Positions 8,200 through 48,509 of a stretch of DNA of 64,000 bases are shown one piece after another; within the stretch, counting starts at the first letter, position 1; each line of letters starts with the position of its first letter. Where the stretch lies: IMG/VR virus record IMGVR_UViG_3300021197_001489, positions 124,001-188,000 of that record. The stretch is one strand, 5' to 3'. The notes under the pieces were generated by a model. The model worked only from the letters and a program-made list of their open reading frames with translations. It did no database searches and was not told where the DNA came from. The translations under genes and the position numbers were made by a program.

Positions 8200-9227
8200 G
8201 CCTAGCACTGGATCACTGGCATATTGAAGTAAGCAGCGTTTGCACATTGCAGTGCCCGCGATGTACTCGTGCTGAAGTTCCAGAAACACTGCTTAACCGA
8301 AATCTCAATTTAAAATTTTTTCAAGAACAAATCGGTGAAGAATGGATAACAAAAATTCGCAAAATCACATTCTGTGGCGACGATGGTGATCCAATCTATG
8401 CCAAACAGTTTATCGAAATTGTTGAATGGATCAAAACGGTTAATCCTGATATTCAGCTCTTGATTATCACCAACGGCAGTTATAAAACTGCTGATTGGTG
8501 GCATCGTCTTGCTTGTGTACTCAATGAAAATGACGAGGTTCATTGGAGTTTAGACGGCTGGAATCAAGATAGCAACAGCAAATACAGAGTAAACTGCGAC
8601 TGGGCAAGTATTATGTTGGGCATAATAACTTTTCGTGTTTACAACAAAACCACATACACCGTGGTGGCAAGTATAGCATTTAGATTCAACGAAAACAACT
8701 TGCAAGATATAAAACAGATTGCAACAGATAACAATTTTGATTGTTGGCAACTTACAAAAAGTACAAAATTTGGTAGCAAATATCCAGTCGCTTATGGCAC
8801 AGACGACTTGCTAGAGCCTCTAGATACTGAATTGGTTGCGGCAGGACATCGTTTTGAAAGAACACAATACCCACTGAGCGACAAAACTCGACCAGGAAGC
8901 GATCTCAAAGAGTTGTTTTGGCAACGTGCGCAAAAATTAAATGCAAGCGACGAGTATCCTGCATTGTGCTATATCGGCAATAAAGGTGTATTTTTAAAAA
9001 GCACAGGAGAATTTTATCCGTGTTGCTGGACAGCATTACGCTATCCACATAATACAAAGTGGATCGAGCTTGCAGAAACCAAATTTAACCTGTACAATAG
9101 CACATTGGATCAGATACTAGATGATCCATGGTGGAGTACAGAATTTAGGCAGTTTGACAATCTAGAATGCAAAACAAAATGTATTAAAAGCAAACTTTTG
9201 GATCAGGCTCATGTCACAGAGTGGTAA
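8196..9227 (+). CDS. Radical SAM protein with C-terminal SPASM/twitch-like cysteines
   Basis: CxxxCxxC motif (CTLQCPRC), 'FCGDDGDP', and C-terminal 'CYIG...YPCCW...CKTKC'. Confidence 0.85.
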   Translation: MSLALDHWHIEVSSVCTLQCPRCTRAEVPETLLNRNLNLKFFQEQIGEEWITKIRKITFCGDDGDPIYAKQFIEIVEWIKTVNPDIQLLIITNGSYKTADWWHRLACVLNENDEVHWSLDGWNQDSNSKYRVNCDWASIMLGIITFRVYNKTTYTVVASIAFRFNENNLQDIKQIATDNNFDCWQLTKSTKFGSKYPVAYGTDDLLEPLDTELVAAGHRFERTQYPLSDKTRPGSDLKELFWQRAQKLNASDEYPALCYIGNKGVFLKSTGEFYPCCWTALRYPHNTKWIELAETKFNLYNSTLDQILDDPWWSTEFRQFDNLECKTKCIKSKLLDQAHVTEW

Positions 9228-9235
9228 CTATCACT

Positions 9236-9643
9236 ATGACATGGTACTACCAAGACAAAGAAGTAACTGATATTCCAGAAGGAGCAATTGGATTTGTGTA
9301 CATAATCACCAATCTTGTAGACAATCGCAAGTATATTGGCAAGAAATTGGCACAGTTTAAGCGCAGTAGAAAACCACTCAAAGGCAGAAAAAACAAACGC
9401 AGATACACAGTTACATCAGATTGGCAAGACTATTATGGCAGCAGCGATGCACTTACTGCGGATGTCGAACTGCTAGGCAAAGACAAGTTTAAACGCGAAA
9501 TAATGTTTTGGTGTGCAAGCAAAAGCGAACTTAGCTATGTTGAAGCAAGAGAACAATTTGCACACCGAGTATTAGAAAGCAAAGACTGGTATAACGGACA
9601 TATACAGGTTCGGGTACACCAAAAAGGCATACTAAAGGAATAA
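9236..9643 (+). CDS. Small GIY-YIG (Seg-like) endonuclease
   Basis: 'GFVYIITNLVDNRKYIGKK...YYGSS...E...WYNGHI'. ATG at 9236 gives 135 aa. Confidence 0.85.
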   Translation: MTWYYQDKEVTDIPEGAIGFVYIITNLVDNRKYIGKKLAQFKRSRKPLKGRKNKRRYTVTSDWQDYYGSSDALTADVELLGKDKFKREIMFWCASKSELSYVEAREQFAHRVLESKDWYNGHIQVRVHQKGILKE

Positions 9644-10187
9644 ATTTACAGGCAAATGATAACTAGCATAAACACTTATGCACAGGCACACTCAGAGCAA
9701 TGCTCAACTTTCTCTTTTAAATTTCCCAGCTAACATCGGAACACTGATTGGTCGGAATAGTTCGACTCACCTTGCAGTCTGCCAGCAGAAATGTTGTAGC
9801 CGTCAGAACTGGTGCGTTCCAAGGACATAGCTAACTATAGGCTAAAATGACATGGGCTCTGTGAAACAGATACAACCCATGCCCGAAGATACTTTGCTTG
9901 AAGGGGTATACAAGGGTTCCGTTGCGAGTCAAGGCTAGAGTAGGAGGTACAGCGTAACCGCCTCCGTACACAATTGTAATCTCTTTATTCAAGTGACTGA
10001 CACGACTCAGATGATGACTTTCAGTTTATGCTTGCCCTGTGTAAGGGCAAGTATGACCAAAAAATCTAGATGATAACGGAACGCTTCGCTTTGCTCGCGT
10101 GTTAACAGTATTGCTGAGCGTTAGCGATAGCAATAGATGTCTTTAGACATCTCGATAAGTTATTATTAAAACTTTGTGATTGTTATT
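9644..10187 (+). ncRNA. Candidate large structured ncRNA (unknown family)
   Basis: ~540 nt with no ORF of 60 aa or more in an otherwise gene-dense genome. It has about ten stems, a GAAA tetraloop, G-U pairs and long-range pairings (see findings). Strand is inferred from operon direction. Confidence 0.55.
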
Positions 10188-10511
10188 TTAGTATTGGTCT
10201 GGCCAATCTCTATATAGCAAATGTTGAATTGTTTCCATATCAACCATTTGGTTAAAGCCGTGATGCTTTTCTTCGATGTTGTCTGTGTCTGTAACCACAT
10301 GCTTCATGGCATCGTCAAGGTCTTGCATGTTTTTGAATTCCATGTCAATGCGCCACTCACCAACATCCATGCTCCTGAAGCCCAGTTTCATTCTGGTAAT
10401 ACGATAGCTTTGCATGGTAGGCAGTGCATCCAAGAACTTTTTCATATTGGTTACAAATTCATGTGGGTTAACGCCTTCTTTTACGTCACAGTAGATAGTG
10501 TAAACGTCCAT
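10188..10511 (-). CDS. Small alpha/beta-barrel-like protein (recalls DUF6614-type proteins)
   Basis: 'MDVYTIYCD...YRITRMKLGF...LYRDWPD'; family call from memory, unverified. Confidence 0.5.
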   Translation of the reverse strand: MDVYTIYCDVKEGVNPHEFVTNMKKFLDALPTMQSYRITRMKLGFRSMDVGEWRIDMEFKNMQDLDDAMKHVVTDTDNIEEKHHGFNQMVDMETIQHLLYRDWPDQY

Positions 10512-10963
10512 TATTTGACTCCTAAGTTGTCTGATGGAAATATTGTGAATCCATCTATTTGTTTCTTGTATTCATGTGCTTCGCCTAGTATTATCAACTC
10601 GTAACCCAACTCTTTGTATATTGCACATTCGGTTTTCATACTAGCAATGCCCAGTTTCAGTTTTGGATTGCGATAATCCCATGCAAACTGTAGAGCTTCA
10701 ACTGCTCGATTGTTTATCTTGTACATCATACTCCAGGCAACAAGGTCGTTGTTGTCGTAGTATGCTATTATGTCGTTGTGTTCTGCTACAAACTCTTCTT
10801 GATAGATTGGCCACACACTTTTGAATTTTTTATAATCAGCATACTGTTGATAGATTGTGAGCATTTGACTGGTTTTGGCATATCTTTCGTCTTGCAACAA
10901 TATCTTGTGATTGGTTTCTGCTGTGTAGTCAGTATCTGCGAGGTTTATGTAGCAGTAAGTCAT
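10511..10963 (-). CDS. GNAT-fold protein resembling the C-terminal domain of aminoacyl-tRNA-protein transferases (ATE/Bpt-like)
   Basis: 'IAYYDNNDLVAWS...QFAWDYRNPKLKLG...E...KELGYELIILGEAHEYK'. Confidence 0.55.
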   Translation of the reverse strand: MTYCYINLADTDYTAETNHKILLQDERYAKTSQMLTIYQQYADYKKFKSVWPIYQEEFVAEHNDIIAYYDNNDLVAWSMMYKINNRAVEALQFAWDYRNPKLKLGIASMKTECAIYKELGYELIILGEAHEYKKQIDGFTIFPSDNLGVK

Positions 10964-11460
10964 CTTGGGTCTTCTCTGTTTGTAAACAAACCTTGCAAAT
11001 ACTGTTCATCCCAGCCATTGTAAAAACCTTTTTTACCAAGCAGCTTGGCATGACTGTGTAATTTGCTGAGGCTTTGCACCAATGCTAGTGCATACTTACC
11101 CTGATTGAACTGTACCCCTTTGACCATTTCTACATTTTCTGGATGATCAGCCAGTGCCAACATGTCTATGGGTACCAGTGTTTCTTCGTTGATGCTGTCA
11201 ACTGCATCTTCAAAATCGTCTGGTGCATACCCTTGTGGATTGTATGCATAAATGTACACATCTTGGTCTCCCATGCCTTCTTGTGCAACATCTAGCATGT
11301 CAGCGTACAAATCTGTTCCGATACGCACAGTGTACTTGTTTTCCAGACGTGCTTTTCTGGCATAAGGGCATGGTGCCCAGTTGCCCAGTGCAGGATGCGG
11401 CACTTCTACAAAGTTGATCAACCAAGATTCAATGTCAGCTTTTACGTCATCTATTACCAA
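10960..11460 (-). CDS. DUF1415-like protein
   Basis: 'W...FVE......LGNWAPCPYARKA' and 'ADHP' resemble the family's CPFA and FHP motifs. Confidence 0.5.
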   Translation of the reverse strand: MVIDDVKADIESWLINFVEVPHPALGNWAPCPYARKARLENKYTVRIGTDLYADMLDVAQEGMGDQDVYIYAYNPQGYAPDDFEDAVDSINEETLVPIDMLALADHPENVEMVKGVQFNQGKYALALVQSLSKLHSHAKLLGKKGFYNGWDEQYLQGLFTNREDPR

Positions 11461-11630
11461 AACGGTTGTCCAGTCTTTTTTGCAGTCTCAAGGTTCTCTT
11501 TGATTAACTTGCCCATTGATTCGCGTTCACTTACGCTCATTTGTACAATCTCACTGTAAGTCACACCACCTCGCATAAACCAGCAAATCTTGAGCATGTC
11601 TTCTTTGAGGCCCTTAACTTCTTTGTCCAT
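11454..11630 (-). CDS. Small baseplate/tail assembly chaperone-like ORF (gp51- or gpT-like); possibly made mainly as a frameshift extension
   Basis: 'ICWFMRGGVTYSEIVQMSVSERE'. The ATG at 11630 has a weak RBS, and the frame stays open upstream across the gp26-like stop. Confidence 0.6.
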   Translation of the reverse strand: MDKEVKGLKEDMLKICWFMRGGVTYSEIVQMSVSERESMGKLIKENLETAKKTGQPFW

Positions 11631-14713: not shown

Positions 14714-16459
14714 ATGTCTTGGAAAAAATACTTTAAAGTTGTAGACAACGCAGGCGGACAACTTTCTCCTATAAGCGGACAAAACAACCGTGGTCCAAGT
14801 TATGGATCTGGCGGTTCAGGTGGACAGTTTGGTTTTAAAAACTATCAAAGCCATTTGCCTGAAGTATACTCAGGACATCCTAATAGAATTGAACGCTATA
14901 ATCAATATGAAAACATGGATAGCGACAGTGAAATCAATGCCTGCTTGGATATTATCTCAGAGTTTAGCACACAAACAAACGAAAGCAACAACACACCGTT
15001 TGAAGTTGAGTTTACAGACACTCCAACAAACAACGAAGTTGAAATTATTCGCAAGCAGTTGCAACAGTGGACCAAGCTAAACAAATTTGATCAACGAATG
15101 TTCCGCATCTTTCGCAACACGCTGAAGTATGGAGATCAAGTGTTTGTGCGTGATCCAGAAACATTTGAACTGTACTGGGTCGACATGACCAAAGTGGTGC
15201 GTGTCATTGTAAATGAAAACGAAGGCAAACTTCCTGAGCAGTATGTTATTAGAGACATCAATCCCAACTTTCAAAATATGAGCATTGCGCCTAAACAAAC
15301 CACCGACTATGGCACTGGCACAAATTCAGGACAAATTATTGGCACTGGCGGCAGCAACATGGGCGGCTCAAACTATACCGTACCAAATATGCCCAGTGGG
15401 CAAAGTAGATTTGAACACACTGTAAACGAAACAGTCATTGATGCTAAAAATATTGTGCATCTTGGTCTCAGTGAAGGTTTGGATTTTTTCTGGCCGTTCA
15501 GCCAAAGTGTGCTAGAAATGATATTCAAAGTGTTCAAGCAAAAAGAACTGCTTGAAGATTCAATACTGATATATCGTGTGCAACGTGCGCCAGAGCGCAG
15601 AGTGTTTTACATTGACGTAGGCAATATGCCAAGTCATCTTGCTATGCAGTTTGTGGAGCGTGTGAAAAACGAAGTTCACCAAAGACGTATTCCAAATCAG
15701 CAAGGCGGACAAGCCGGCACTACAATGGATACCACATACAATCCGCTTTCAATCAATGAAGATTACTTCTTTCCGCAGACAGCAGAAGGCAGAGGTTCAA
15801 AAGTTGAAACATTACCCGGTGGTGAAAATCTTGGACAGATTGATGATTTAAAATACTTCAATAACAAGATGTGCAGAGGCCTGCGTGTTCCTAGCAGCTA
15901 CTTGCCAACTGGTCCAGATGATAGCGATCGTCCAATGAATGATGGTCGTGTTGGCACAGCACTTATACAAGAATACAGATTCAATCAGTACTGTGAAAGA
16001 CTGCAAAAGCAGGTTATACAACATCTTGATGATGAATTCAAAATGTTTATGCGTTGGAGAGGCTTTAATATTGACAACAGTCTGTTTGCAATTAAGTTTG
16101 CAGCACCGCAAAACTTTGCCAGTTATCGTCAAGCTGAGCTTGATACAACAAGAATGCAGGCATTTAGCGCATTAGAACAATTGCCCTATATGAGCAAGCG
16201 TTTTCTCATGAAGCGTTACTTGGGATTGACTGACGATGAACTGCAAGAAAACACAGAAATGTGGAGTGAAGAAACTGCACAGCCTGTTGACACACAGCCG
16301 GAAGGCAGTGATTTGCGTACAGTTGGTGTTAGCCCAGGTGATTTTGAAGGTGACATTGAAATGGGAGATGCTGTTAGCGCAGAAGCAGAAGGCGGCGAAG
16401 CAGTTGATGTCAATGTTGATATGGCTGCACCAGCAACACCAGAAGCACCGCCGGCATAA
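14714..16459 (+). CDS. gp20: Portal protein (T4 gp20)
   Basis: 'LLEDSILIYRVQRAPERRVFYIDVGNMP' and 'EDYFFPQTAEGRGSKVETLPGGENLG'; promoter ATAAATA at 14671-14677. Confidence 0.95.
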   Translation: MSWKKYFKVVDNAGGQLSPISGQNNRGPSYGSGGSGGQFGFKNYQSHLPEVYSGHPNRIERYNQYENMDSDSEINACLDIISEFSTQTNESNNTPFEVEFTDTPTNNEVEIIRKQLQQWTKLNKFDQRMFRIFRNTLKYGDQVFVRDPETFELYWVDMTKVVRVIVNENEGKLPEQYVIRDINPNFQNMSIAPKQTTDYGTGTNSGQIIGTGGSNMGGSNYTVPNMPSGQSRFEHTVNETVIDAKNIVHLGLSEGLDFFWPFSQSVLEMIFKVFKQKELLEDSILIYRVQRAPERRVFYIDVGNMPSHLAMQFVERVKNEVHQRRIPNQQGGQAGTTMDTTYNPLSINEDYFFPQTAEGRGSKVETLPGGENLGQIDDLKYFNNKMCRGLRVPSSYLPTGPDDSDRPMNDGRVGTALIQEYRFNQYCERLQKQVIQHLDDEFKMFMRWRGFNIDNSLFAIKFAAPQNFASYRQAELDTTRMQAFSALEQLPYMSKRFLMKRYLGLTDDELQENTEMWSEETAQPVDTQPEGSDLRTVGVSPGDFEGDIEMGDAVSAEAEGGEAVDVNVDMAAPATPEAPPA

Positions 16460-21840: not shown

Positions 21841-21940
21841 CTAAATAACTGTAACATAACGCAATAATGCGTTTTATGCGGAATACCATCCGCGTAGTGG
21901 GCTAGAACCCACATCGGACTTCTATAAAGGAGAAAACAAC
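21841..21940 (+). promoter_or_regulatory. Late promoter plus structured leader (two hairpins and an H-type pseudoknot)
   Basis: CTAAATA at 21841-21847. Stems 21858-63/21868-73, 21875-82/21889-96 and 21897-901/21908-12; loop TAGAA pairs with TTCTA at 21920-24; AAGGAG follows. Confidence 0.6.
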
Positions 21941-22615
21941 ATGGGACGTCCTCTCAAAATTAAAAAATCAGCAACCACTGACATTGGTTTCAACAATCCA
22001 GGTGATGATTCATCACCAAGAGTACCAGCTGGCGAACTATACTTTGGTCAAGTTGGCGGAGACACAGCTTTAGCTAACGGCGACAATCCAGTCACATCAT
22101 GCCGTGTCAAAATTGGCTCAGTGGCAGAAGCTGAAGGTTATATCATCCGTCAAAAAGGTGCAACCAAGTACCTAGTTGCTGATGCAACTGGTGTTACAGC
22201 CGGTTCGTTTGTTACTAGTAACACATATATTATTACTTCACTTGGCAACACTGATTTCACTCTTGTTGGCGGTCCAGCAAATGCAGCAGTTGGCACAACA
22301 TTCGTAGCTACCGGCGCAGGCTCAGGCTCAGGCACAGTGGATACAATTGGTACATGTGTACTGGCTAACAAGGCTGATGCTTCTTTAGCAGCAGATGAAA
22401 TGACAATAACTTACTCAGATGTTGGATCAGGTCAAGTTCGCATCAAGCGCATGACTAACAAATATGCAATTAACTTTTCTGATGCTAGAGTTGTAGTTAA
22501 CTACTTTAACATCATTGATGATACAGTTGAGAAGTCAGGTGCTGATAAAGACACAATGACAGGTGGTGTATCAACTATTGACGTAGTACAGGTTGAGAAT
22601 CCAATCTACGGTTAA
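21941..22615 (+). CDS. Virion structural protein (post-capsid, decoration-like)
   Basis: Strong RBS and own terminator; Thr/Gly/Ala-rich. Confidence 0.55.
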   Translation: MGRPLKIKKSATTDIGFNNPGDDSSPRVPAGELYFGQVGGDTALANGDNPVTSCRVKIGSVAEAEGYIIRQKGATKYLVADATGVTAGSFVTSNTYIITSLGNTDFTLVGGPANAAVGTTFVATGAGSGSGTVDTIGTCVLANKADASLAADEMTITYSDVGSGQVRIKRMTNKYAINFSDARVVVNYFNIIDDTVEKSGADKDTMTGGVSTIDVVQVENPIYG

Positions 22616-47969: not shown

Positions 47970-48143
47970 TCATGTTCCACGGATACGATCCTCTCCAAGC
48001 ATAAGATTTAATTGACGCAACATTGTGATAGCAGTGCGTGTCCAAAACTGGTGAGCCCAAGTTCCTTCAGTGCATTTCTCAGCAACACCAAAGCAACGTT
48101 CGATGCGTTGCTCGTACAATTTAATTGTTTCACTACTTACCAT
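47970..48143 (-). CDS. Small hypothetical protein (57 aa, below ORF-track cut-off)
   Basis: Hand-translated MVSSETIKLYEQRIERCFG...DRIRGT*; tiles the gap in the operon. Confidence 0.5.
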   Translation of the reverse strand: MVSSETIKLYEQRIERCFGVAEKCTEGTWAHQFWTRTAITMLRQLNLMLGEDRIRGT

Positions 48144-48303
48144 TTAACATATACCTCGTAAATTCAAAGAACAATAATCCAAATCCAAACACGCCAACTG
48201 CCGTGCCAGCAAGTAGGAAACTCTGTGTAGGATCATATCCTAGTACAAACAAGCCAACTGATCCAACAAACAATACCCAACACGCAAAGATAGATACTAA
48301 CAT
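48133..48303 (-). CDS. Small two-helix membrane protein (56 aa, below cut-off)
   Basis: Hand-translated MLVSIFACWVLFVGSVGLFVLGYDPTQSFLLAGTAVGVFGFGLLFFEF...; GGAG RBS. Confidence 0.55.
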   Translation of the reverse strand: MLVSIFACWVLFVGSVGLFVLGYDPTQSFLLAGTAVGVFGFGLLFFEFTRYMLNGK

Positions 48304-48305
48304 TT

Positions 48306-48509
48306 TTATACTCCTTGCGTATTAAGTTTTACACATGCAGTCTTTACAAACTGATATTCACCAGCATATTTGGCTTTAATTTTCTTTTGTGCAAGTAAAC
48401 AACTTGCCTTGGTTGGCATGTTACGTTCCCACATTAGGTTAAAGTCTTTTGTAGCTCCAAGTTCTGCTACATTTACTAGCGATACTAACAAAATAAATTT
48501 GGTAATCAT
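48306..48509 (-). CDS. Small hypothetical protein, possible signal peptide
   Basis: Hydrophobic N-terminus and two cysteines. Confidence 0.5.
   Translation of the reverse strand: MITKFILLVSLVNVAELGATKDFNLMWERNMPTKASCLLAQKKIKAKYAGEYQFVKTACVKLNTQGV

Follow-up and report, generated by a model that had tools for sequence, protein, structure and literature searches.

The analysed window is a stretch of 64,000 nucleotides of the IMG/VR virus record IMGVR_UViG_3300021197_001489 (positions 124,001 to 188,000 of that record), and at 9644-10187 it holds a gene-free gap between a small GIY-YIG nuclease gene on the + strand and a convergent DUF6614 ORF. The gap (544 nt) is the longest ORF-free stretch of the window, but not "by far", as the preliminary description had stated, since the next one is 507 nt long (47999-48505). 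All six frames are closed (3-11 stops), with 8-11 stops per + frame in the conserved core; no conserved ORF was found, and the ORF pieces hit nothing in Pfam or PHROGs. GC content is slightly raised, at 0.45-0.46.

Reading the sequence directly, we found every element of the preliminary description in place: the stems GCATAA/TTATGC (9666-81), GTCGGA/TTCGAC (9751-66), CAGCA-GAAA-TGTTG (9783-96), CATGGG/CCCATG (9851-81) and GGAGG/CCTCC (9943-65), the 11-bp stem (10028-54) and the AGATGAT repeat, which extends to the 10-mer AGATGAT(G/A)AC at 10009-18 and 10068-77. The observation it reported is thus confirmed, with the corrections given below.

Conservation and location

Conservation in related phages had been named as a condition that the candidate RNA must satisfy, and it is satisfied at the DNA level in about 130 viral and metagenomic contigs: 43 IMG/VR and 87 metagenome stretches carry the invariant 26-nt motif, giving 79 distinct full-length copies. 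The nhmmer E-values reached 1e-74 when the single window sequence was the query and 1e-169 with a profile. The RNA stays alignable at 70-83% identity where the flanking genes are only partly alignable, and the neighbours on both sides vary while the RNA stays. It occupies one fixed position in a clade of uncultured marine and freshwater jumbo T4-superfamily phages, namely the 3' end of the + strand gp55-gp47-gp46-(variable genes)-nuclease unit, just before the convergent structural-gene block. The features of the locus are collected in Table 1, where homologous loci are denoted by their number in our set (L005, L010, L018, L026, L107).

Table 1. Features of the locus in window coordinates, with the observations that support them.
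Coordinates	Strand	Feature	Supporting observations
9221..9643	+	140-aa single-domain GIY-YIG nuclease (SegE / T4 EndoII-like size), last ORF of the gp55-gp47-gp46-rSAM operon, directly upstream of the RNA	SegE-type, Pfam PF19835, E 7.7e-35; PHROG 447 (148-aa profile) covers the full length, so the protein is not truncated
9644..9734	+	Clade-specific 5' extension or leader: hairpin 9666-9681 (GCATAA/TTATGC), conserved ACAGGCA, small GAGC/GCTC hairpin followed by a T-rich run	Conserved at 79-84% only in the window's close clade; hairpin keeps pairing through a compensatory inserted base pair (GUCAUA/UAUGAC in L018); in L010, L005 and L026 a TTtACA-N17-TAnTAT promoter-like site lies just upstream
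9735..10155	+	Conserved core of the RNA, about 420 nt	nhmmer matches to related loci; 79 distinct full-length copies; four alignments
9750..9767	+	P1 hairpin (GGUCGGA / UUCGACU, tetraloop)	38 distinct sequences all form a 6-7 bp hairpin here, with many different stem sequences
9768..9814	+	P2 (9768-71 with 9811-14; 9772-74 with 9804-06) enclosing P3, an irregular hairpin at about 9776-9802 capped by GAAA 9788-91	P2a pairs switch AU:46/CG:29 and CG:40/AU:30; P3 forms in 39 of 39 distinct sequences; GNRA-type loops in many homologs
9828..9844	+	P4 hairpin with a nearly invariant loop, UAACU(A/U)(U/A)AG	Loop CTAACTTA(A)GG conserved in all clades
9851..9881	+	P5: outer stem 9851-56 with 9876-81, inner stem 9860-63 with 9871-74, 7-nt loop AAACAGA	All five outer pairs in the model show double-sided changes; inner register UGUG/UACA 77-79 of 79 paired, with a UA to CG switch
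9882..9916	+	P6 hairpin (9882-84 with 9914-16; 9889-92 with 9906-09); its 13-nt loop supplies the 5' strand of P7	9883-9915 GC:64 UG:7 CG:6; 9884-9914 UA:42 CG:27 UG:9; distal pairs, read by eye in one alignment, switch AUAC/GUAU, GAC/GUC and UGU/ACA
9894..9996	+	P7, pseudoknot 1: 9894-9902 (inside the P6 loop) with 9988-9996, 9 bp	Six of six modelled pairs have double-sided changes, e.g. 9897-9993 CG:56/UA:23 and 9901-9989 AU:48/UA:28/CG:3
9921..9958	+	P8, pseudoknot 2: 9921-9926 (GUUGCG) with 9953-9958 (CGUAAC) in the loop of P10, crossing P9 and P10	79 of 79 paired at all six positions; 9925-9954 UA:61 CG:17 AU:1; L107 carries GUUGAU/GUCAAC
9937..9984	+	P9 (9937-40 with 9981-84) enclosing P10 (9943-48 with 9960-65) and the variable hairpin P11 (9968-77)	P9: four of four pairs with double-sided changes; P10: three of six, at 99.5% paired; P11: GNRA loops in many homologs
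9997..10018	+	P12 (9997-99 with 10008-10) and conserved motif copy 1, AGAUGAUGAC (10009-18)	9998-10009 UA:57 UG:9 CG:3; motif nearly invariant in two alignments
10028..10054	+	P13, a long, almost invariant stem (CUUGCCC / GGGCAAG core), followed by the invariant UAUGAC	77-79 of 79 paired in six of the seven core pairs (10031-37 with 10045-51); the seventh, 10035-10047, gapped in 67 of 79 and paired in 11 of the other 12; almost no variation, so neither confirmed nor contradicted by covariation
10064..10077	+	Single-stranded conserved element: palindrome AUCUAGAU overlapping motif copy 2, AGAUGAUAAC (10068-77), in an A-rich context	Invariant except A/G at 10068, a change that keeps self-complementarity through U-G; any role is inferred only
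10111..10133	+	P14: stem 10111-15 with 10129-33, conserved GA / GA(A) internal loop, 2-bp mini-stem 10118-19 with 10124-25, tetraloop	Forms in nearly all of 62 distinct 3' ends, with many different outer-stem sequences; 10114-10130 CG:45 AU:28
10135..10152	+	P15, terminal hairpin (AGAUGUC/GACAUCU); conservation ends right after it and no U-tract follows	Forms in nearly all of 62 distinct 3' ends, with covarying stems such as AGAUCUAC, AGAACUUC and AGAUGUGC; no terminator-like site found
10188..10511	-	Convergent DUF6614 ORF, first gene of the minus-strand block that runs to the baseplate hub	Pfam PF20319, E 1.3e-20; synteny table

Secondary structure and covariation

The core folds into about 15 helices. 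A 5' domain holds P1-P4, and a central domain (P5-P11) is locked by two pseudoknots, P7 and P8, while P13 is flanked by the two copies of AGAUGAU(G/A)AC and, after an A-rich linker, is followed by the two adjacent 3' hairpins, P14 with tandem G-A pairs and P15. Covariation had been proposed in advance as a test, and the outcome is strongly in favour of the fold. RNAalifold on 31 sequences gave 60 pairs, 26 of them with compensatory changes. For the central domain, on the model-based alignment of 90 hits, 97.1% of cells are paired against 80.9% in shuffles, 19 of 29 pairs have double-sided changes, and the covariation score is 0.462 against 0.152 shuffled and at most 0.129 in slid controls (0 of 500 shuffles reach it). 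The structure is thus conserved and supported by compensatory substitutions beyond phylogenetic and positional controls. In supported pairs, G-U/U-G outnumber A-C/C-A 511 to 40, so this is an RNA read from the + strand.

Folding energy against dinucleotide shuffles, a further test set beforehand, gave a much weaker result, with z = -2.29 for the whole gap on the + strand, -2.08 on the - strand, -1.61 for the core and -1.0 for a homolog, and thermodynamics alone would not carry the claim; it is the comparative evidence that decides it. RNAalifold on plain MAFFT alignments missed P1 and P3 because the variable hairpins were misaligned, and both were recovered by folding each sequence separately between anchors. 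An all-against-all covariation scan was swamped by phylogenetic signal from two main clades and was used only together with a requirement for helix continuity. Several junction contacts are, like P13, invariant, so covariation does not bear on them. The long-range pairing of GCGUCA (9815-20) with UGAC (10055-58) proposed by RNAalifold is invariant or mismatched in the window clade and is left unconfirmed.

Most of the stems in the preliminary description are conserved with compensatory changes, and its CTTGAA/TTCAAG pseudoknot is confirmed and corresponds to P7. However, three of its pairings are not conserved: GTTCCGTT/AACGGAAC is specific to the window lineage, GAGTC/GACTC keeps only three invariant pairs, and TCTG/CAGA is displaced by the better-supported register TGTG/TACA.

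Searches against known families and in cultured phages

An Rfam search had also been named in advance as a test of novelty, and it returned no matching family. In Rfam 15, the whole window at gathering threshold gave only freshwater-2 at 21857-21943, region 9400-10400 at E up to 10 gave three chance-level snoRNA/RUF2 hits far below threshold, and ten homolog loci at E up to 1 gave nothing. ARAGORN found no tRNA or tmRNA gene in the whole window. The exact motif has 0 matches in 185,579 bacterial and archaeal genomes, and a distant-homology blastn search of the region against 50,697 GenBank phage records gave no match.

We then sought cultured relatives through the capsid protein, gp46, rSAM and GIY-YIG (tblastn of DUF6614 against phages gave no match), and scanned the syntenic loci of PA5oct, Vibrio phage 2.275.O and Sinorhizobium phage Phosso, plus the Melnitz locus around its GIY-YIG homolog, with the covariance model with filters off. 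Only chance-level scores were obtained, and no cultured phage examined has the RNA. The four ncRNAs reported for PA5oct lie elsewhere in that genome (PMC7318152). Literature searches by topic and by conserved sequence strings found no description of a roughly 420-nt RNA at this locus.

Interpretation

The main inference of the preliminary description, a large structured phage ncRNA matching no family known to its author, is supported, while its two optional additions, a partnership with the upstream nuclease and a replication-origin transcript, are not established. What our analysis shows is that 9735-10155 (+), with a clade-specific 5' extension from about 9644, is a gene for a large structured non-coding RNA of a family not present in Rfam 15, roughly 420-515 nt long. 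Everything on how the RNA is made and what it does is inferred, since no transcriptome data were at hand for these uncultured phages, and transcription, transcript ends and stability are therefore inferences too.

Our best reading, held with moderate confidence, is a stand-alone, trans-acting RNA gene. In favour of an independent gene are the neighbours on both sides, which vary while the RNA stays, and the promoter-like site that appears directly upstream when an ORF is inserted. In this view the RNA would be made early or mid infection, in the window by read-through from the strong sigma-70-type operon promoter and, where an extra ORF separates it from the nuclease gene, from its own TTtACA-N17-TAnTAT promoter. 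Its 3' end would be defined by the P14-P15 hairpins through processing or exonuclease trimming rather than by an intrinsic terminator; no terminator-like site was found in 9400-10400, and P15 is not followed by a U-run in any clade. The RNA would then act in trans as a compactly folded molecule, either as the RNA subunit or scaffold of a ribonucleoprotein or as a ribozyme, with the invariant single-stranded segments (the P4 loop, the P5 loop, the two AGAUGAU motifs, UAUGAC and the AUCUAGAU palindrome) as the functional surface and the peripheral helices and GNRA loops holding the fold. Against this reading, the window has no convincing promoter of its own directly upstream of the RNA, no terminator follows it, and single-sequence folding energy is only weakly better than shuffles. 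Nothing identifies a partner protein or a substrate, no biochemical activity is known for it, and the constant presence of a nuclease gene upstream could mean that the RNA works with or on that gene rather than independently. A T4-type late promoter at 9637-9646 (AATAAATTTA) only partly fits the late motif of this phage, GATAAATACTG, and was left undecided.

Large RNAs with this much conserved tertiary-type structure are rare and have historically turned out to be ribozymes or cores of ribonucleoprotein machines, and the few orphan classes (GOLLD, ROOL, OLE, raiA) are actively studied. The complexity of the present RNA matches that of ribozymes and ribonucleoprotein RNAs. The RNA would add a new orphan class, confined to abundant but uncultured jumbo T4-like phages and located beside the host-DNA-degradation and recombination genes. 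Its sequence diversity is already sufficient for structure modelling and for synthesis-based biochemistry, and it gives a practical marker for this phage clade in metagenomes.

Alternative explanations

It is possible, although we consider it unlikely, that the RNA is a functional partner of the small nuclease encoded upstream, as an RNA cofactor or specificity subunit, or as an inhibitor or antidote that restrains it, for example by sparing phage DNA while host DNA is degraded together with gp46/gp47. All 72 RNA loci with enough upstream sequence carry a same-strand nuclease gene upstream (GIY-YIG in 55, PDDEXK_15, PF24608, in 17), and in 49 loci it ends less than 150 nt before the RNA or overlaps its start. 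A divergent RNA variant at a further locus (L140) also follows a PDDEXK gene, and both nucleases are single catalytic domains of 135-176 aa with no obvious nucleic-acid-binding extension. However, two unrelated nuclease folds alternate before the same RNA, and the nuclease type does not track the RNA subtype, because PDDEXK occurs with both central-domain variants. In 23 loci one or two unrelated ORFs sit between nuclease and RNA, and a close relative (L084) has the GIY-YIG gene but no RNA. More than 500 cultured cyanophage, pelagiphage and other genomes carry homologs of this GIY-YIG without such an RNA (in Melnitz, ordinary small ORFs follow the gene), and conserved gene order in T4-like phages can explain the adjacency. 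The partnership is thus unproven.

About equally doubtful is a cis-acting part of the operon mRNA, that is, a structured 3' UTR that blocks 3'-5' exonucleases, directs processing, or insulates the convergent early and late transcription units. In favour of this, the element lies at the 3' end of the + strand unit facing convergent genes, the upstream ORF in several clades runs right up to, or about 10-36 nt into, the modelled 5' edge of the RNA, no own promoter is evident in the window, and the element ends in two stable hairpins. On the other hand, about 15 covarying helices, two pseudoknots and long invariant single-stranded motifs far exceed what known 3' stabilisers or terminators need, there is no U-tract, another + strand ORF follows the RNA in many loci, so it is not always terminal, and a dedicated promoter-like site appears when it is separated from the operon.

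Less likely still, the RNA gene may be mainly a landing site for free-standing homing endonucleases, with the upstream GIY-YIG and PDDEXK genes as selfish elements that target this highly conserved sequence, which would explain the adjacency without any functional link. Unrelated nuclease families occupying the same slot next to a highly conserved sequence is a pattern of the Seg/Mob endonucleases of T4-like phages, and the best Pfam match is the SegE GIY-YIG domain. However, no endonuclease-free allele was seen among the 72 informative loci, the proteins lack the DNA-binding domain typical of Seg enzymes, and homologs are near-universal in cyanomyophages (514 records), which fits a resident gene of the T4 EndoII type better than a mobile one. 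In any case, this explains only the neighbourhood and not what the RNA does.

A replication-origin or other DNA-level element, such as an R-loop primer transcript, a packaging site or cruciforms, is very unlikely. The region lies at a module boundary, and related cultured jumbo phages have 1-1.3 kb poorly coding gaps at the syntenic place (10050-11530 in PA5oct, record L292 of our set, and 15411-16424 in Phosso, record L294). Against this, the G-U excess means that pairing is selected in RNA of one strand only, pseudoknots have no DNA-duplex counterpart, and there are no iterons or AT-rich unwinding element, as no direct repeat in the region exceeds 18 nt and GC is slightly raised. An origin primer needs no double-pseudoknot fold with about 15 covarying helices.

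A decayed protein-coding gene or a self-splicing intron, although group I introns in phages are often linked to GIY-YIG endonuclease genes, is effectively refuted by the closed frames, hairpin lengths that differ among homologs by 1-2 nt, the ORF pieces without Pfam or PHROG hits, the complete flanking ORFs (no split host gene), the absence of any group I or group II model hit even at E up to 10, and a pseudoknot topology that differs from the P3/P7 arrangement of group I introns.

To hypothesize further, the RNA could be a new catalytic or nuclease-coupled RNA: either a novel ribozyme class carried by jumbo phages, or the RNA subunit, specificity factor or antidote of the small nuclease that precedes it in every informative genome, which would make it an RNA-dependent DNA-degradation or self/non-self discrimination module acting with the gp46/gp47 nuclease. 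We regard this as unlikely, but the ribozyme-like complexity of the fold, the single-stranded invariant motifs and the 72 of 72 nuclease association leave both forms possible, and if the RNA works with the adjacent mini-nuclease, it would reveal a new kind of RNA-protein partnership in phage-host conflict.

Comparison with known RNAs

GOLLD and ROOL RNAs are also several hundred nucleotides long, with many covarying helices, pseudoknots and GNRA loops, often phage- or prophage-encoded, without a known biochemical function and discovered by comparative genomics. The AUCUAGAU palindrome could in principle mediate self-association, as kissing contacts do in the cryo-EM assemblies reported for those RNAs (bioRxiv 10.1101/2024.12.08.627333), although this is inference only. 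No match to the GOLLD, ROOL, HEARO or OLE models was found; the RNA is smaller than GOLLD, occurs in aquatic jumbo T4-like phages rather than in Lactobacillales or rumen-associated elements, and is not next to tRNA clusters. Candidate structured RNAs predicted from IMG/VR (Fremin et al. 2023, PMC10690425) come from intergenic regions of the same data source, rest on covariation evidence of the same type and average 67 nt; whether fragments of the present RNA are among them was not checked.

The omega-RNAs of OMEGA nucleases (HEARO/IscB, TnpB) are likewise structured RNAs of a few hundred nucleotides encoded immediately next to, or overlapping the 3' end of, a small nuclease gene, but the nucleases here are GIY-YIG or PDDEXK and not RuvC/HNH, the HEARO model does not hit, the nuclease family exists widely without the RNA, and no transposon ends or obvious variable guide segment were identified, although a guide segment was not specifically assayed. 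Group I introns with GIY-YIG homing endonucleases, such as the T4 td intron with I-TevI, share the T4-like phage context and a GIY-YIG gene beside a pseudoknotted RNA of a few hundred nucleotides with GNRA loops; here, the nuclease ORF has its own stop and lies outside the RNA, no Intron_gpI hit was obtained, and the helix order differs.

Bacterial RNase P RNA and tmRNA have a similar size (350-420 nt) and pseudoknotted, multi-domain folds, but no RNase P family was among the hits at E up to 10, and there is no tRNA-like acceptor end and no tag reading frame. A type III toxin-antitoxin antitoxin RNA (ToxI-like) is not indicated, as there is no tandem array of short direct repeats but only short two-copy repeats, such as the AGATGAT(G/A)AC motif 59 nt apart. 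A hammerhead-like reading of P14 (UGAUGA...GAA) was rejected because stems I and III have no counterpart, and a kink-turn / C-D box reading of UGAUGA with CUGA was rejected because CUGA is not conserved (CUGG, UCGU and CUGU in other clades).

Genomic Context

The ORF-free gap is bounded by two genes, upstream by a 140-aa single-domain SegE-type GIY-YIG nuclease (PF19835, E 7.7e-35), whose full-length match to a 148-aa PHROG profile shows that it is not truncated, and downstream by a convergent DUF6614 gene. Every stem and repeat listed in the preliminary description is physically present at its position, including the AGATGAT(G/A)AC repeat, and the observation itself is real. The gap is also the longest ORF-free stretch of the window, but not by far as had been claimed, since its 544 nt compare with 507 nt for the next one. 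Folding energy, which had been named in advance as a point on which the idea could fail, is weak evidence when taken alone, with z = -2.29 on the + strand and -2.08 on the - strand for the whole gap, -1.61 for the core and -1.0 for a homolog.

The window belongs to a 316-kb IMG/VR contig, in which the gene order is gp55-like late sigma factor, gp47, gp46, radical-SAM/SPASM protein, GIY-YIG nuclease, the gap, then convergent DUF6614, an ATE_C-like ORF, two unknown ORFs and a baseplate hub, followed by + strand portal and major capsid genes. The ATE_C-like ORF (150 aa) has only weak similarity to the C-terminal domain of arginyl-tRNA-protein transferase (PF04377, E 0.001, below threshold), and it is conserved next to DUF6614 in most RNA-bearing loci. 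The capsid protein is 64-67% identical to those of jumbo phages such as PA5oct, Vibrio phage 2.275.O and CBB, and gp46 is 50% identical to that of PA5oct; this is a jumbo member of the T4 superfamily with no close cultured relative.

Positions of the features (window coordinates unless a locus is named)
Feature	Position	Strand	Remarks
GIY-YIG nuclease ORF	9221-9643	+	upstream of the gap
Gap	9644-10187		
5' part	9644-9734		conserved only in the window's own clade
Core	9735-10155		conserved across all clades
P1	9750-56 with 9761-67		
P2	9768-74 with 9804-14		encloses P3
P3 loop	9788-91		GAAA; GNRA-type in many homologs
P4	9828-31 with 9841-44		invariant loop
Central domain model	9848-9998		region of the covariance model
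P5	9851-56 with 9876-81, plus 9860-63 with 9871-74		
P6	9882-84 with 9914-16, plus 9889-92 with 9906-09		
P7	9894-9902 with 9988-96		uses the loop of P6
P8	9921-26 with 9953-58		uses the loop of P10
P9	9937-40 with 9981-84		
P10	9943-48 with 9960-65		
P11	9968-77		variable hairpin
P12	9997-99 with 10008-10		
P13	10028-38 with 10044-54		
P14	10111-15 with 10129-33		conserved GA/GA(A) internal loop, 2-bp capped mini-stem
P15	10135-41 with 10146-52		
DUF6614 gene	10188-10511	-	convergent
ATE_C-like ORF	10511-10963	-	
freshwater-2 RNA motif	21857-21943	+	ends at the start codon of ORF 21941-22615
Second-longest ORF-free stretch	47999-48505		507 nt
12-nt inverted repeat	47884-95 and 48509-20		perfect; brackets the 507-nt stretch
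ORFs preceded by the recurring motif	14714, 24673, 38486, 50282, 57967, 61156		ORF starts
Divergent form of the RNA	L140:5590-6030		also in loci L139, L142-L148, L150
Syntenic stretch, PA5oct	L292:10050-11530		
Syntenic stretch, Sinorhizobium phage Phosso	L294:15411-16424		

Conservation and Coding Potential

Conservation in related phages was one of the conditions set beforehand, and it is fulfilled: the gap alone finds DNA homologs in about 60 of 160 related viral loci, with E down to 1e-74 over nearly its full length, while a profile raises this to 117 hits among 203 loci, some of which hold the same contig twice. An invariant 24-26-nt motif (CCGTTGYGAG.CAAGGCTRGRGTA) was matched exactly in 43 IMG/VR contigs and in 87 metagenome contigs, marine (Tara) and lake, and in none of 185,579 bacterial and archaeal species, each represented by one genome. 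After removal of duplicates, there are 79 distinct full-length copies, with an effective number of about 29 at 90% identity. At the DNA level, the RNA is as conserved as its protein-coding neighbours or more so, and it stays alignable over 300 nt or more in distant relatives where the neighbours align only in patches.

The region is not coding. The core has 8-11 stops in each + frame and 3-8 in each minus frame, the hairpins differ in length by one or two bases among homologs, the longest accidental ORFs differ from locus to locus, and the ORF pieces hit nothing in Pfam or PHROGs.

Structure of the RNA

RNAalifold on 31 sequences predicted 60 pairs, 26 of them with compensatory changes. A covariance model of the central domain was then built, which recovered 90 matches among 100 sources (the window and 99 loci). 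In that alignment, 97.1% of cells form standard pairs (80.9% after shuffling), 19 of 29 pairs show changes on both sides, and the covariation score is 0.462, against 0.152 shuffled and at most 0.129 when partners are slid; no shuffle out of 500 reached the observed value on any of the five measures. This alignment is fitted to the model, which favours the structure somewhat, although the same helices stand out in plain MAFFT alignments. A helix-continuity scan and explicit pair counts gave the model of P1 to P15 listed in the table.

The central domain contains two pseudoknots, formed by P7 and P8. P8 is paired in 79 of 79 sequences at all six positions, with UA, CG and AU alternatives at one of them. 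P1, P3, P14 and P15 were misaligned by sequence-only alignment, however, folding each distinct sequence between conserved anchors shows a hairpin at the same place in every case for P1 (38 sequences) and P3 (39), and in nearly every case for P14 and P15 (62), with widely differing stem sequences. P13 and several junctions never vary, and so they are neither supported nor contradicted. Three pairings of the preliminary description fail the comparative test: GTTCCGTT/AACGGAAC has an unconserved 3' partner, GAGTC/GACTC keeps only three invariant pairs with mismatches elsewhere, and TCTG/CAGA is broken in 22 of 79 sequences at one pair, while the overlapping register is 77-79 of 79.

In the supported helices, G-U/U-G pairs number 511 and A-C/C-A only 40; the pairing is therefore selected in RNA read from the + strand, which is the strand of the upstream operon. 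This result, together with the pseudoknots, excludes DNA cruciforms.

Inferred Expression Signals

The early promoters of the phage are near-perfect sigma-70 sites, e.g., TTGACA-N17-TATAAT before the gp55-like gene, and its late motif is GATAAATACTG. A recurring motif, (G/C)(A/C)TAAATACTG, lies 15-25 nt before the start codons of six structural genes, and is probably the gp55-dependent late promoter of this phage, a variant of TATAAATA of T4. In the window there is no convincing promoter just before the RNA and no terminator after it, and co-transcription with the operon is the simplest reading. In relatives where an extra ORF separates the nuclease gene from the RNA (loci L010, L005 and L026), a TTtACA-N17-TAnTAT site sits directly upstream of the 5' extension, which suggests selection to keep the RNA transcribed. 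As P15 is never followed by a U-tract, the 3' end is probably made by processing.

Neighbourhood of the RNA

The RNA sits in a variable island, where radical-SAM genes, a glutamate-synthase-like oxidoreductase, sulfotransferase-like and pyruvyl-transferase-like ORFs and unknown ORFs come and go on both sides. Auxiliary-metabolism-like genes, including a 471-aa glutamate-synthase-small-subunit-like oxidoreductase, a sulfotransferase-like ORF and a polysaccharide pyruvyl-transferase-like ORF, are inserted around the RNA in different relatives (loci L208 and L026, +424 to +1839 after the RNA; L015, L005 and others), marking the site as a hot spot for gene gain and loss. One feature is constant: in all 72 distinct loci with enough upstream sequence, a small nuclease gene lies upstream on the same strand, GIY-YIG in 55 and PDDEXK_15 in 17, and in 49 of them it is immediately adjacent. 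A divergent form of the RNA (locus L140) has the same length and position and also follows a PDDEXK gene; its P1-P3 and P14-P15 parts are recognisable by nhmmer, but its centre is too diverged for the covariance model. The family is broader than the 79 copies analysed.

However, an obligate partnership is argued against by the fact that the two nuclease folds are unrelated and do not track the RNA subtype, that ORFs are inserted between nuclease and RNA in 23 loci, and that locus L084 has the nuclease but no RNA. Also against it, homologs of this GIY-YIG are present in 514 GenBank phage records, most of them cyanophages, and the closest one examined (Melnitz, 58% identity) is followed by ordinary small ORFs rather than a long non-coding gap. 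This small family (PHROG 447) is widely annotated as "NAD synthetase" in cyanophage genomes, although the Pfam match shows that it is a GIY-YIG nuclease domain, so that annotation looks wrong. In T4, a 136-aa GIY-YIG enzyme (endonuclease II) starts host DNA breakdown, which gp46/gp47 completes. A resident nuclease at the end of a gp47-gp46 operon is therefore plausible without invoking homing or an RNA partner, which is a lead and not a test.

Comparison with Known Families and Possible Roles

A search of Rfam 15, proposed beforehand as a check on novelty, gave no match to the RNA of the window or to ten diverse homologs, and ARAGORN finds no tRNA or tmRNA. It is not a group I intron, as no host gene is split, no model hits and the pseudoknot topology differs; it is not an omega-RNA, because the nuclease type is wrong and no HEARO model hits; and it is neither a ToxI-like repeat array nor a terminator. 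Literature searches by topic and by sequence found no description, although fragments could be among the roughly 67-nt IMG/VR candidates of PMC10690425, which were not inspected here. The cultured relatives examined do not have it. The nearest analogues in kind are the orphan large ornate RNAs GOLLD and ROOL, which are also phage-linked and of unknown function.

The main interpretation of the preliminary description is supported: this is a new family of large, double-pseudoknotted non-coding RNA, specific to a clade of uncultured aquatic jumbo T4-like phages. The fold is demonstrated by our analysis, while transcription, the transcript ends and the function are only inferred. We consider a trans-acting ribonucleoprotein RNA or a ribozyme to be the most likely mode of action, with slightly better than even confidence. 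A role as partner of the nuclease and a cis-acting role as a 3' UTR are possible but, to the same degree, unlikely, and it is more doubtful still that the RNA is a mere homing-endonuclease target, which would explain the neighbourhood. An origin element is very improbable.

Other Non-Coding Stretches

Cultured jumbo relatives, PA5oct and Sinorhizobium phage Phosso, have 1-1.3 kb stretches with no ORFs, or only tiny annotated ones, at the syntenic place between the gp46 side and the baseplate hub, and in PA5oct the stretch includes a perfect TTGACA-N17-TATAAT site. There is no similarity to this RNA and no Rfam hit, but they might hold unrelated ncRNAs or origins. The second-longest ORF-free stretch of the window gave no Rfam hit at gathering threshold; besides being bracketed by the inverted repeat, it lies upstream of a strong TTGACG-N17-TATAAT-type promoter before ORF 48988. 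Just downstream of the capsid-region genes there is a full-length match to the Rfam freshwater-2 RNA motif (68.5 bits against a gathering score of 49.9), a known cis-regulatory candidate of unknown function, found here in a jumbo phage structural module.
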